From: Bugula neritina
Taxonomy: Eukaryota > Animalia > Bryozoa
DNA: 64,000 nt
Reading direction: 5' to 3'
NCBI GenBank assembly: GCA_964035545.1
Contig: OZ037773.1
Span: 3,129,751-3,193,750, forward strand
This document shows, one piece after another, positions 401-61,820 of the stretch. How positions within the stretch are numbered: position 1 is the stretch's first letter; each line of letters opens with the position of its first letter. The notes under the pieces were generated by a model. The model was not told the DNA's origin, did no database searches, and saw nothing but the letters and a program-made list of their open reading frames with translations. A program made the translations under genes and the position numbers.

Positions 401-2655
401 TGGCTCCAACTGGTATATCACTCAATAAACCAGAAACTATCATAGAAGGAGAAGAGTTTACTTTTGATTGTAACTCTACAGGAGCAGATCCTGTGTCAGT
501 CTATGAATACAGTGAGTATTTTTGAGTTCATCACATATTATTTATTCTACAAAATAAGTTAAGTCTAAAACAATACAGTACGTTGCAATATTAGATTGTA
601 ATTTGATAAAATCAGTAATCCGTTTATACCAAGTAAAGAAAGATAAGTTTTGAAATATTCAACATTTAAAAAGTTGAAGCCAACAATTGTTTTGATTTTC
701 AGATTCTAACTACAGCAGCTATCTAATGATTAGAAATGTACTAGCTATAGTACAATTTTAACTATTATAAATAGTTCTATATATAGTATCAAATCCTTTG
801 TTATATGAGCTGTGCTAGCATATATTAAATAACATGCATATGACTGCCTAGAGTGCAATGATATATATTGACTTATTTTTATATTTCAGAAGTAAATGGT
901 AACACAGTGGCTGGCAGATATACTCCTACTGAGACAGACAGAGCTGGACTAACTTTATCCTGTACAGATAAAGAACATTCTAACTGGAAGGGAGGGAATA
1001 CTGAACAAACTGTTACTATCACACCACAGTGTGAGTATCATCAAAACCACACTACTCGTTTGCACAAGTTTGTAAATAAGTTATGCAGCCTAAACTACAT
1101 TTGGTGAAGTTAAACAACTATAAACGAGTCTACAATTTTTACTTTGTAGATTTAGCTAGAAAACATGATGAAATTAATATAATCATAAAAGAGTTTAACT
1201 CTGGACAATCTGATGCTAAACTGGATTGTAGCCAACATGTAGATGCTAACCCACCACTCTACAGCTTCACTTGGATATATAATGGACATTTCACCAGAGA
1301 AACATCTAATGAGCTGCCTTTAGGTTCTCAAGCAGATGGTGTCACAGAAACAGCCTCATGTACAGCTGAAAATGGTCTACGTATGAATTTATATAATCAG
1401 CTATATTACAATTTAGGAGTATGCTAAGTTCACAATATTTAGATAGTTTCCTTATAAAAGTTACATCATCTCATTTCATCAAGAGAAGCTTATTTTCGAC
1501 AAAACATTTTTACCAAAAGTTCGTTTCTATTGTTAGCTATCAATGATTGCGCAGTTAGTTTAACAAGTGAGCTGCGTTCACCTCACTCATGACTTTATTC
1601 ACATAATTTTCAATTTATTGACATTTTGATTGTTCAACTACTGTAGTTAGCTTTATGGAGCAAAATTACTGCATTATAACTCAAACTAACTCTTTGTTAT
1701 TCTCATCCTTTTGCATTTTGTTTGTTTTCTGTAGCAAGAGCTATTATTATATTGTGGGCTATAAAATGGACCAGTTCTGTCACACCACCAAGCACAACGT
1801 CAACAATCATTAACAAAGCTCCTATGAGTGGGGGAATTGCTGGTGGCTGTCTGCTGCTTATCATCACAGCTGGAGTAGCATTCTATCTGGGAAAATTGAG
1901 AGGTAATACAGAATTAAAGTTATCTGTAATGACACGGACGTTTTACTGAAAATATGCCACATAATTTTTAGTCAAACTTCCTATGCTCGATATCTAATTT
2001 GAATGCTGGGTGAACTATATAAAGCAAACTTAAAAAAGAGAATGAATTCTAGTTGATCTTCATTCAAACAAATAAAATTTGGTAGAAAGCTTTAAAAGTA
2101 CTTCTTATGACTGAAGAATGTTATTATAAGTGACATTTATATATAGGGTAGATTGATAAGAGAAGAAAATTATCTTTTTATCATTAGTTTAAATTTTTAC
2201 TGATAAACGGTAGTAATTTAAATTTTACATGAATTATTCAAATGCAAATGCAAAATGAGCATATCTTTAATCTTTAAGGAATCAGAACACAAGCCGTCAT
2301 TAGGACTGATAACTCCCAATACGCAAAGATGTCTTTCGCTAAGACCGATAACTCTGCATACGCAAATATGTCTGTCACTAGAAAAGATAATCACAACTAT
2401 GACACACTTGATATTTCTCAAACACACCAAGTCAGTCAGTCTCCAGCTAATGAGTCAAAAAGTATTACCAGGAAAGATGATTTATCATATGTAGAAATGT
2501 CAGTCACTAAGAAACATGTTGACAAGTATGACTCAGTTGATATTTCACAACCACAAGCAGTGAGTCAGTCTGGAACTAGCCTTGTAGACTCAGATGGCCA
2601 TGTGGGACCTGCTCAGAAGATGTATGCTAACATTGAACTTAAAATTCTTTGTTGA
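401..2655 (+). CDS. Ig-superfamily-like type I receptor 'A', 3' part (5' exons lie before the window)
   Basis: Phase-1 exons 401-511, 890-1030, 1150-1380, 1735-1902 and 2279-2655, each flanked by AG/GT, splice in one frame. They encode a C2-like domain (FTFDC..GADP..YEYKVNG..LTLSC), an I-like domain ([25 protein letters not shown]), a Ser/Thr stalk, a TM (GGIAGGCLLLIITAGVAFYL) and a tail with YAKM, YANM, YDTL, YVEM, YDSV, YANI. Confidence 0.85.
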
Positions 2656-59700: not shown

Positions 59701-61820
59701 AAAATACATCTAATACTGTGTGCCAATATATATATAGTCAAAAACGTCTGGTTGTAAAAAATTACTTAACGAATAATAACAAAAGTGTATACAAACTGCA
59801 TATACCAAATTTTGAGAATATGAACCAATTGTAAACCAATTGCACTCCATTAAAGGACATGACAGTGAGAATAAAATATTTAACAAGCAGTCTTTACTTA
59901 TTCCTACTTATTCATACTTATTCATATCTTAACTTTTTCATATGAATGTTCATAACACTAACACTGTGGTATAATAGCAGCAGTTCGTTCAGTGTTTCCT
60001 CCCTTCCAGTTAGAATGTTCTGTATCCGAACAGGATAAAGTTAGTCCAGCTCTGTCTGTCTCAGTAGGAGTATACTTACCAGCCACTGTGTTACCATTTA
60101 CTTCTGAATATTAAAACATATCTGTTTTTGCCAAGTTATGATGGTAAAGAACAACAGATGATCTGTTCCTATATGTTTATAAACTTATCAATATTACAAC
60201 ACAACCTCATAATTTTTATTATACTCCTATATATAATCCCATTATAGCAATATGACTTGTAAATTGCTATAAGCAATGCTCTACCAGTTACACAAAATTT
60301 TGAAACTTCTCAAAGAGTTAAGTCTAACTTTGTAAAAATAACAACTCTAAAAACTTAACTCTTTTTTTAGAAGAAGCTGACACCTAAAACTCTAGATTTA
60401 CAAATAACTGTTTTAAATTTATAAAATAAAAAGTATGAAAAATAATTACACTCATGTAGTATTATTAGATAATTGTATTTATATATGTCACAGTCACATA
60501 CAAACGTAATTTATTTCATATTACATGTAGCAAATATTTTATGATTTTTACTATATGCAAAGAAAAGCTATTAATTTATAGTTTACTAGGTAGAAAGTCA
60601 TGGAACACATGTTTGAATTTTAATTAATTAAACACTTCTATATATATACTCACTGTATTCATAGACTGACACAGGATCTGCTCCTGTAGAGTTACAATCA
60701 AAAGTGAATTCTTCTCCTTCTATGATATTTTCTGGTTTATTGAGTGATATACCAGTTGGAGCCACTGTTGAATAAAATCGCAAATATTAATTTAAATTTA
60801 ATGCATGCCTCCCAGAAATTAACGGGATATATAATCCAAAATTTAATTTGAGAGTATAGAACTATATAGCAAAAATCAATGCTGAAATTTTTAATTTCAC
60901 CCATGAAATTACACACATTAATTAGCTATGAAAGTGTCAAATATAGCATTATTATAAAATGCTAAGCAGATAGTTTTGTTTAGGACCTATAATAGTAATA
61001 TACTCGAAAAATATTTATGGTGCATACTGAGTAAATTTTAGTGATGCCATCAACCATCACCTATCATGGCAATAGATGAATAGAAGTTTAATCTGTGTTG
61101 TATAATATAGAGCTTTACTAAAGTTAGTTACAGTGAAACAAAAAAGACAACCAGTTATGCTATAATAATTTTGAAATAGAATAATTTATTTTTAAGATAT
61201 TACCTTTGACTTCCATTGAAACTTCTGAAGAAAGAATTTCTCCCACACCTCCTTCAAATCCTCTACAGTAGAACTTTCCTTTGAGTGATGAATCAGTTAT
61301 AGTGAGTTGTACAGAAAGAGTGAACCCTTCAGGTTTACCAACTGAGTTACAGTATGCATTACTGACTTCAGGTCCTTCTATTCCAGAGACAGTAATAATA
61401 TCTGGAGATGGTGCACTTTCCCATACTGTGTCATCCTCAGCACTTCTACTACATCCACTTCTGTAGACTGTACTGTCTCTGTCAGCTTCATATCGTAGCT
61501 GTAAGGATCTCAGATTAGTATAACCAGATGCTTCACATGTGAAAATTATCTTCTCATCTTTATAAAAATCTGGTGAAGTTGTAGTACTGTAGTCTATCTC
61601 TGTAGATGGTTGTGCTATAAGAAAAATATATAACATATAAAACTCTAAGATCCCCAATATGTACGTACTTTATGATACTGTGCACCAATATATTTTGCAA
61701 TCCTTAAAGTTCTGTGTATCCAAATTATATATAATATAGTTGAAGCATAAAACAATTGTTACCTGTAGTGTAGATAGATATATAGACCAGACAATACAGG
61801 AAGTGGTAGTAGCACATCAT
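56799..61820 (-). CDS. Ig-superfamily-like type I receptor 'E', 740 aa: SP-V-C2-V-C2-I-TM-tyrosine-repeat tail
   Basis: Exons 61763-61820, 61204-61614, 60654-60764, 59963-60103, 59253-59666, 58623-58733, 58160-58300, 57757-57987, 57337-57534 and 56799-57205 total 2223 nt, are all phase 1 and are open. Confidence 0.85.
56907..57179 (-). repeat. Coding 39-bp minisatellite, 7 copies of TDNSPYT(E/D)(L/M)SVTR
   Basis: Seen directly in the tail exon of receptor E. Confidence 0.93.

Follow-up and report, generated by a model that had tools for sequence, protein, structure and literature searches.

Clustered V-set-like immunoglobulin receptors with tyrosine-rich tails on chromosome 9 of the bryozoan Bugula neritina, a candidate non-self recognition locus

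A 64,000-nucleotide stretch of the genome of the bryozoan Bugula neritina (contig OZ037773.1, positions 3,129,751 to 3,193,750; hereafter the window, with positions counted from its first letter) contains a group of immunoglobulin superfamily (IgSF) genes belonging to a family that is transcribed and spliced, and whose products are predicted to be type-I membrane receptors with a membrane-distal V-set-like domain and a tyrosine-rich cytoplasmic tail. The window almost certainly lies at 3.13-3.19 Mb of chromosome 9, the smallest chromosome (contig C9), which measures 10.88 Mb in assembly tzBugNeri2.1 (PMC11480708). We lean towards reading these genes as bryozoan-restricted signalling receptors that serve non-self recognition, of microbes or of conspecifics, rather than as housekeeping adhesion molecules. 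That role is preferred because a focused variable patch in the V domain, tandem clusters in which genes and pseudogenes are mixed, lineage-specific expansion and immunoreceptor-style tails are untypical of conserved adhesion molecules but are known in combination from receptor families of the immune and allorecognition types.

Gene organisation of the cluster

Searching the window by tblastn with the peptides of exon-sized open reading frames (ORFs) recovered seven Ig-family units on both strands (Table 1): three intact genes (A, D and E, the first cut by the window start), gene C, which is broken by a retrotransposon, two fragments and an orphan array of V-like exons. Every unit listed in a preliminary description of the window, which had claimed at least seven sharing one set of phase-1 exons, was recovered in this way, and its count of 13 V-like exons is exact (eight in the array, two in E and one each in D, the gene C fragment and the fragment at 46 kb). 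The mixture of intact genes and pseudogenes that it described is likewise present, since A, D and E are intact, C is disrupted, two units are fragments and three array exons are broken. In the summary count the boundaries of the V-like exons are all phase 1 and GT-AG, the flanks read exon by exon showing array exons a6 and a1 to be without a GT donor.

Spliced in silico, a check proposed in the preliminary description, the seven exons of gene D give an open frame of 453 amino acids (aa) that encodes a signal peptide (SP), a V-like domain, an Ig domain divided over two exons (Ig2), a third Ig domain (Ig3), a stalk with a transmembrane segment (TM) and a tail, and the ten exons of gene E give an open frame of 746 aa in the order SP, V, Ig2, V, Ig2, Ig3, TM and tail. 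All introns of both genes are GT-AG, and the internal exons are all in phase 1, with lengths divisible by three. Gene A extends beyond the window, its SP and V exons lying 674 to 35 bp upstream of the window start (V exon, C9:3129307-3129711).

The disrupted units have lost different parts. In gene C the remainder of the V exon and the Ig2a exon are missing, and the remnant of a long terminal repeat (LTR) retrotransposon that separates its V and Ig2b fragments matches Pfam Integrase_H2C2 (E 4.7e-14) and RT_RNaseH (E 8.4e-35); a second retrotransposon remnant is found downstream in window coordinates (Table 1). A (GA)n/(TC)n microsatellite of about 500 bp (38384-38878) adjoins the remnant in gene C. 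The Ig2b/Ig3 fragment has no neighbouring V, TM or tail exon by tblastn against the window.

All eight exons of the orphan array have an AG acceptor and six of them a GT donor, the spacers of about 75-80 nt are made of normal flanking-intron ends, and three of the eight exons are broken by frameshifts or stops. Neither an SP exon upstream nor an Ig2, Ig3 or TM exon downstream was found by blastn and tblastn within the window. A protein of 793 aa from a B. neritina draft (KAF6036352.1), which belongs to a divergent subfamily, has at least six V-like domains in series, which shows that several V exons in a row can be joined by splicing in a single product; because such a poly-V relative exists, the simplest reading of the array is a decaying poly-V gene or a product of exon duplication, and a part as gene-conversion donor or alternative-exon cassette is possible. 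The divergent poly-V subfamily also occurs at C9:0.81-0.87 Mb, and a further member of the divergent subfamily has a long Ser/Thr/Pro-rich, mucin-like N-terminus ahead of its V-like domain.

Table 1. Positions of the Ig-family units, their exons and other features in the window
Feature	Position	Strand	Basis or detail
Gene A, in-window part	401-2655	+	tblastn; splice flanks read
Gene A Ig2a	401-511	+	
Gene A Ig2b	890-1030	+	
Gene A Ig3	1150-1380	+	
Gene A stalk/TM	1735-1902	+	
Gene A tail	2279-2655	+	
CS-alpha-beta defensin-like gene	7734-7782 + 8096-8232	+	two exons joined in phase 1; between gene A and the rest of the cluster
Ig2b/Ig3 gene fragment	24240-24634	+	tblastn
Fragment, Ig2b remnant	24240-24356	+	
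Fragment, Ig3 remnant	24422-24634	+	
Tandem array of 8 V-like exons	28179-32007	-	Tandem Repeats Finder (TRF) period 487 bp, 7.8 copies, 85% matches
Gene C, disrupted	34395-39269	-	tblastn; SP exon by blastn; tail ORF
Gene C tail	34395-34577	-	
Gene C TM	about 35050-35252	-	
Gene C Ig3	35490-35717	-	
Gene C Ig2b fragment	35849-35929	-	
LTR-retrotransposon pol remnant in gene C	36189-37462	-	between V fragment and Ig2b fragment
Gene C V fragment	38145-38255	-	37-codon stub
Gene C SP exon	39193-39269	-	
Second retrotransposon remnant	42538-44141		
V fragment, isolated, frameshifted	46086-46404	-	tblastn: three pieces in different frames
Gene D, whole	48134-51877	-	
Gene D tail	48134-48333	-	STYEEL-x9-YECI, YEIP, C-terminal YVNM
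Gene D stalk + TM	48767-48955	-	hydrophobic stretch then basic residues; RNA joint 48767/48333
Gene D Ig3, C2/I-type Ig	49137-49367	-	Pfam Ig_3 E 1e-4, below cut-off
Gene D Ig2b (Ig2 second half)	49475-49615	-	RNA joints at 49615 and 49475
Gene D Ig2a (Ig2 first half)	50255-50365	-	RNA joint 50255/49615
Gene D V-like exon, 138 codons	51053-51466	-	AlphaFold2 pLDDT 92.3; V-set matches; 51466 used as acceptor in RNA contig
Gene D SP exon	51802-51877	-	ATG and GT donor; spliced frame open
Gene E, whole	56799-61838	-	open spliced frame; Ig2b-to-V junction type seen in RNA contig
Gene E tail	56799-57205	-	
Coding 39-bp (13-aa) repeat in gene E tail	56908-57185	-	TRF period 39, 7.1 copies; one Yxx[LM] per unit
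Gene E TM	57337-57534	-	
Gene E Ig3	57757-57987	-	
Gene E second Ig2b	58160-58300	-	
Gene E second Ig2a	58623-58733	-	
Gene E V2	59253-59666	-	
Gene E first Ig2b	59963-60103	-	
Gene E first Ig2a	60654-60764	-	
Gene E V1	61204-61614	-	
Gene E SP	61763-61838	-	

Fold, transcription and variability

Across 23 aligned V exons, taken from the window and from elsewhere in the genome and sharing 25-87% identity with that of gene D, there are four invariant cysteines (C26, C54, C88 and C116) and a single near-invariant Trp, W64, situated beyond the extra C54, and most of the sequences read FYC ahead of C116, the Y-C motif of strand F; we infer a disulfide between C26 and C116, the canonical B-F pair. 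The AlphaFold2 (AF2) model computed on this alignment is all-beta (predicted local distance difference test, pLDDT, 92.3; predicted template modelling score, pTM, 0.87), with strands at residues 3-10, 21-29, 34-43, 49-56, 64-67, 98-105, 111-120 and 125-135. The top Foldseek matches of the model in the PDB were V-set domains only, namely nanobodies, T-cell receptor (TCR) V-beta, CD8-alpha and VH/VL (E about 5e-4, TM-score 0.5-0.58), and exhaustive comparison with VIA-align returned the V domains of TCR, CD8, antibodies, MPZ and nectin-3 D1 at Z 8.5-10.5, the TCR matches including V-beta, V-alpha and V-delta (root mean square deviation about 3 A, 104-117 of 136 residues aligned). The membrane-distal domain is thus modelled as a V-set-like Ig fold, C' and C'' topology included, which agrees with the Ig-like V domains claimed in the preliminary description.

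Sequence profiles do not detect this domain. Three V exons had no match in Pfam, V-set PF07686 included, at E values up to 1; the V-set profile likewise had no match in the relatives from the bryozoan Watersipora introduced below, and in PDB sequence searches, by hidden Markov model (HMM) with the V profile and by phmmer starting from one full-length Watersipora protein, no match reached an E value under 0.03. The canonical Trp41 of strand C, expected about 15 residues beyond the first cysteine, is not kept, position 41 being Tyr or Phe in most of the V sequences (an equivalence by spacing, not by structural alignment). The two extra cysteines flank the most variable segment of the domain, C54 standing at the end of strand C' and C88 in a 7-residue helix (85-91) that the DSSP string of the model places between C'' and D. 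In the window Ig3 has a weak match to Pfam Ig_3; among the Watersipora relatives Ig3 passes the curated Ig_3 cut-off in two proteins and Ig2 passes Ig_2 in a third. Feature and fold searches of the ESM Atlas returned generic Ig or beta-sandwich clusters only and no informative relatives, and a homodimer prediction for the V domain scored 0.02 against a mark of 0.32, which gives no answer for or against binding.

Only two public runs contain the region of gene D, an RNA-Seq library filed as 'symbiont metagenome' and a DNA run, and contigs of both were compared with window positions 48030-53000. The contigs of the DNA run are 100% identical to the window and cover all bins; in the RNA-Seq run the exon bins are covered and the intron bins are at zero depth. 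Three joints in the RNA contigs coincide exactly with predicted splice sites, as the preliminary description had proposed to check: 48767/48333 joins TM to tail, 50255/49615 joins Ig2a to Ig2b, and a joint from 49475 to 51466 connects the end of Ig2b with the start of V, a connection needed only by E-type double-module genes. These contigs establish transcription and the predicted splicing for the family, though not for gene D itself. A chance pattern of ORFs was ruled out by the 13 exons with conserved splice sites, the confident fold and the RNA joints.

The ratio of non-synonymous to synonymous divergence (dN/dS, Nei-Gojobori) was calculated for 20 intact V exons of a close subfamily and for 16-22 copies of each other exon type. 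It is 0.59 over the whole V exon, 0.93 for V residues 55-72 and 0.52 for the rest of the V exon, with values of 0.28 for Ig2a, 0.36 for Ig2b and 0.48 for Ig3. Tree-based counts gave 71.5 non-synonymous and 22.5 synonymous changes in V residues 55-69, compared with 218 and 121 in the rest of the exon, a non-synonymous excess in the former (Fisher p=0.026). On these sequences residues 55-69, between the two extra cysteines, are the most variable part of the protein. The V domains had been called hypervariable and rapidly evolving in the preliminary description; what stands is the concentration of non-synonymous change in residues 55-69, whereas a dN/dS of about 0.93, calculated among paralogues and not alleles, does not carry the stronger wording. 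Tests of positive selection on these paralogues would be confounded by gene conversion between them. Public metagenome contigs were rejected as a source of allele polymorphism, as they come from another cryptic Bugula species: one JGI metagenome contig (L025) has no genome match above 87%, and a second (L042), which runs collinear with C9:226-230 kb, shares no more than 81-93% of its nucleotides with that region even when non-coding sequence is counted. This material therefore belongs to a different member of the B. neritina cryptic-species complex and is uninformative on alleles.

These figures bear on the proposal that the family is decaying and unimportant, its intact copies being recent duplicates and its diversification neutral. 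One unit in two within the window is disrupted or a fragment and dN/dS is about 1 in the variable segment, as would be expected from such decay, but the ratio stays clearly under 1 in Ig2 (0.28-0.36) and the V framework (0.52-0.54), the four cysteines are invariant across copies only 25-87% identical, and the family is common to Bugula and Watersipora, yields spliced transcripts and retains about 24 close Ig3 copies with open frames. We consider neutral decay very improbable.

Genomic range, signalling motifs and probable role

The V exon of gene D has 76 matches in the genome, 61 of them on chromosome 9, where they fall into blocks at 0.03-1.09, 3.07-3.25 and 4.13-4.20 Mb, and the Ig3 exon has 40 matches, including the close open copies mentioned above; these counts are lower bounds on the size of the family, and the preliminary description had suggested such a genome-wide count. 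The local cluster, with the window at its centre, extends over at least about 170 kb and holds several further E-type genes. Two pairs of loci on chromosome 9 (C9:210228-214389 with C9:226260-230421, and C9:69.7-73.1 with C9:103.9-107.3 kb) have identical match scores and identities, indicative of very recent segmental duplications, each with a receptor gene.

Searching 1.84 billion representative proteins with a profile of the V domain gave only 55 hits, the strong ones being single-exon ORFs from JGI and Logan assemblies; unnamed hits carry no taxon, and statements on range refer to the named ones. The named full-domain relatives are all uncharacterised bryozoan proteins (B. neritina KAF6030178.1 and KAF6036352.1, Watersipora subatra XP_067939839.1 and others), and a few long multi-Ig proteins, such as a catfish sialoadhesin-like protein, align over about 25 residues only. 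A word-indexed homologue search with a V exon of gene E returned short unnamed JGI and Logan ORFs only, its length window having excluded full-length proteins. The Watersipora relatives have the same V-Ig-Ig-TM-tyrosine-tail plan in at least 10 paralogues, and in a maximum-likelihood (ML) tree their V domains form one clade (99/94) apart from all Bugula subfamilies; 1:1 orthologues are absent, and each lineage has expanded the family on its own. The open literature that we searched contained no paper on such a family, nor on immune-type or allorecognition receptor genes of bryozoans. As far as sequence comparison goes, the family is bryozoan-restricted and lies outside any known family, in keeping with the earlier remark that its proteins were not recognisable as a named one.

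Two types of tail and TM segment were found, a short one in C and D and a long one in A and E. Short tails read ...STYEEL-x9-YECI...YEIP..., with the D version ending in YVNMKP, and long tails are built on a 39-bp (13-aa) coding repeat: the E tail has two S-x-YTEL units, YxxM units, HNYDSL and a C-terminal TYVNIKS, and the A tail has YxxM units, HNYDTL and a C-terminal YANI. There are 2-6 YxxM units among the cluster genes, and the C-termini are ...YVNMKP, ...YVNIKS and ...YANIELKILC. These motifs are conserved among paralogues, and the C-terminal YxN is also conserved in Watersipora tails. A regular expression for the immunoreceptor tyrosine-based activation motif (ITAM), Yxx[I/L]x(6-9)Yxx[L/I], matches C, D, E and four further cluster genes, always with a spacer of 9, and does not match A; it also matches one of nine Watersipora tails with the same 9-residue spacer. 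The consensus of the corresponding inhibition motif (ITIM), [S/I/V/L]xYxx[I/V/L], is matched by STYEEL in C and D, by STYKEL in the cluster gene 3243063 and by SPYTEL, with SLYTEL or SQYTEL, in E-type tails. The tyrosine-motif tails of the preliminary description are borne out to this extent, the ITAM and ITIM calls being string matches to a consensus and not to a function. YxxM and YxN are classical docking motifs for the SH2 domains of p85 and Grb2. The arrangement Yxx[I/L]-x9-Yxx[L/I] fits the ITAM consensus that has been applied to Alr proteins (PMC9546547). Elsewhere in the genome, two SH2 hits precede Y_phosphatase hits on the same strand at C3:23.740-23.749 Mb, and two SH2 hits precede Tyr-kinase hits at C7:14.371-14.378 Mb; their architectures, read from exon hits, are compatible with SHP-like and Syk/Shark-like effectors, respectively.

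Our proposal for the family is as follows. Lineage-restricted, multigene type-I membrane receptors, clustered on chromosome 9 of B. neritina, would evolve by birth and death, through duplication of genes in tandem and of exons, disruption by retrotransposons, and decay. From the N-terminus, the product of an intact gene comprises a signal peptide, a V-set-like domain of 136 aa with two conserved cysteine pairs, a two-exon Ig domain, a C2/I-type Ig domain, a stalk, a TM segment and a tyrosine-rich tail, the V-Ig2 module being repeated in E-type genes. The membrane-distal V domain would bind ligand, with residues 55-69 freest to change, and ligand engagement would lead to phosphorylation of tail tyrosines in Yxx[L/I]-x9-Yxx[L/I], S-x-Y-x-x-L, the YxxM repeats and the C-terminal YxN, upon which the phosphotyrosines would recruit SH2-domain proteins. 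The cluster is a candidate for a role in immunity or allorecognition.

Alternatively, the genes could encode adhesion or cell-identity molecules of the nectin, CADM or JAM type, whose ectodomains would bring about cell-cell contacts during assembly of tissues or the nervous system, with paralogue diversity acting as a wiring or sorting code and not for non-self recognition. The V-Ig-Ig-TM layout is the nectin ectodomain plan, V-C2-C2 on a single-pass protein, nectin-3 D1 aligns to the V model with Z 8.7, and one Watersipora paralogue has been auto-named 'neural cell adhesion molecule 1-B-like'. We nevertheless rate adhesion as fairly unlikely, as the PDB-wide sequence searches by HMM and phmmer revealed no similarity to any solved adhesion molecule and no nectin, orthologues are lacking beyond the bryozoans and 1:1 pairs are missing even when the two cheilostome genera are compared, and high turnover with many pseudogenes is at odds with nectins, which are conserved small families across animals. 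The tails also lack a nectin-type C-terminal afadin/PDZ-binding motif and have ITAM, ITIM, YxxM and YxN strings instead. In the nectin/CADM family the C-terminus has a PDZ-binding (E/A-x-Y-V) or FERM-binding motif, and the three C-termini given above contain neither. Direct orthology to a conserved adhesion molecule was ruled out, there being none in the V tree. The preliminary description had said that lack of an Ig fold, lack of transcripts or orthology to a known adhesion molecule would speak against it; we found a V-set model, spliced RNA joints and no such orthology.

The Hydractinia Alr family offers a comparison from another colonial invertebrate. Like the bryozoan genes, Alr comprises dozens of clustered single-pass IgSF genes with pseudogenes, the N-terminal domains of both are V-set by predicted structure and largely invisible to Pfam, and models of both have a helix of about 7 residues after C'', which is here 85-91 with its placement read from DSSP (PMC9546547). 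Tails of both match ITAM (Yxx[I/L]x6-9Yxx[L/I]) and ITIM strings, and the SHP-like and Syk-like genes of Hydractinia have possible counterparts in the two tandem-SH2 loci. The two differ in that no sequence homology is detectable (no cnidarian is among the named profile-search hits), the V domain of the bryozoan proteins retains the canonical B-F cysteines and has the second invariant pair C54 and C88, and the order is V-Ig-Ig in place of V-I-(I)-Fn3-like; double V-Ig2 modules, poly-V genes and the 13-aa tail repeat belong to the bryozoan family only. Allorecognition function has been demonstrated for Alr1 and Alr2, whereas for the bryozoan family it is a candidate function.

The cluster might also be an allorecognition complex proper, the bryozoan histocompatibility or kin-recognition locus. 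V variants would then label alleles by homophilic or allele-specific binding, as in Hydractinia Alr1 and Alr2, and would control colony fusion or larval kin aggregation. The host is colonial, no bryozoan allorecognition gene appears in the literature searched, the expansions are lineage-specific, and cluster layout, Pfam-invisible V-set, C''-D helix and ITAM/ITIM strings all parallel Alr (PMC9546547). However, the many near-identical paralogues (dS about 0.2) and the pseudogenes fit a receptor repertoire equally well, and we hold this reading to be distinctly unlikely. An extended version, in which an independent V-set and ITAM/ITIM system would draw on double V-Ig2 genes, poly-V genes and the V array as a gene-conversion reservoir, appears similarly improbable.

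Vertebrate KIR, LILR and NITR clusters resemble the bryozoan one in their tandem birth-and-death organisation with many pseudogenes and in combining Ig ectodomain, TM segment and tyrosine motifs, and NITRs also have a membrane-distal V domain. They differ in sequence, which is unrelated, and in having charged-TM activating partners, of which none was seen among A, D and E; in the bryozoan family ITAM and ITIM strings overlap in one tail, which has YxxM repeats besides. Lineage-specific expansions of V-type or IgSF genes implicated in non-self recognition are also known as VCBPs in amphioxus and Ciona and as FREPs in snails, and these are secreted proteins that include a chitin-binding or fibrinogen domain, whereas the bryozoan proteins are predicted membrane receptors with signalling tails. 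The resemblance to Alr, KIR and NITR is best described as convergent architecture and genomic organisation, not homology.

Several observations weigh against signalling receptors for non-self recognition. Nectins and other adhesion molecules share the V-C2-C2 layout. With confidence dN/dS exceeds 1 nowhere, and dS is also raised in the variable V segment, so that the variability may stem from patches of gene conversion or from relaxed constraint. At 90-95% identity to the window, the RNA contigs must derive from paralogues, or from orthologues in a sibling cryptic species. None of the TM segments of A, D and E has a charged residue (K, R, D or E) of the kind found in paired activating forms, and short tyrosine motifs easily arise by chance, being here in part a by-product of the 13-aa repeat.

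Bryozoans are a major colonial phylum, and the cluster, with its extent of at least about 170 kb and about 40 receptor genes, would provide them with a concrete candidate recognition locus. Self/non-self loci have been hard to find in other colonial animals and share no genes between phyla, and the cluster turns the question of how bryozoans recognise kin, conspecifics or microbes into a testable form. It also adds a predicted bilaterian, non-chordate V-set domain that is missed by sequence profiles, supporting the argument, based on Hydractinia, that V-set diversity outside vertebrates is under-counted. Were the allorecognition reading true, Bryozoa would be a further colonial phylum with an independently built V-set and ITAM/ITIM system of self/non-self recognition; should the genes prove to be adhesion molecules, they would still make up a sizeable unannotated family, of modest interest.

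Other features of the window and the assembly

One gene inside the cluster is not of the Ig family. This defensin-like gene, single-copy in the genome, encodes a signal peptide and a cationic six-cysteine peptide (C-x7-C-x3-C-x9-C-x5-C-x-C) with no Pfam match, and its AF2 model has a helix and a beta-hairpin (pLDDT 73.7), the weak Foldseek matches of which belong almost without exception to the CS-alpha-beta class (scorpion toxins, drosomycin and defensins of insects). The preliminary description had placed defensins, in the plural, in the middle of the cluster; only one CS-alpha-beta gene was found, a regular-expression search and tblastn giving no further defensin-like gene in the window. 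Its position inside an Ig cluster is no more than suggestive.

The base composition is that of AT-rich eukaryotic DNA, with 25-37% GC except in the retroelement stretches at 36-44 kb, and (TA)n runs are common across the whole window. No RNA family was found anywhere in it, 16311-17700 included, with Rfam at gathering thresholds. Two ORFs of 115 aa on opposite strands, one residue apart, overlap head to head at 4941-5412 and constitute an inverted duplication; they have no Pfam match, and the duplication is probably a transposon-like palindrome. An intron of gene D contains a tRNA-like short interspersed element (SINE) at window positions 50660-50900, in which a B-box-like GGCTCGAACCC was recognised by eye. 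Contig depth in the bin 50686-50851 reaches about 0.9-1.4 million in both public runs, and the SINE is therefore a very high-copy repeat of the B. neritina genome.

Many small unplaced contigs of the assembly (e.g. C176:33222-33977, C33:18549-19265, C66, C170 and C304) have full-length kinase matches that read through 5-18 in-frame TAA or TAG codons and almost never TGA, which fits a ciliate code; judged by this codon usage, the B. neritina assembly seems to include contigs of a ciliate cobiont.

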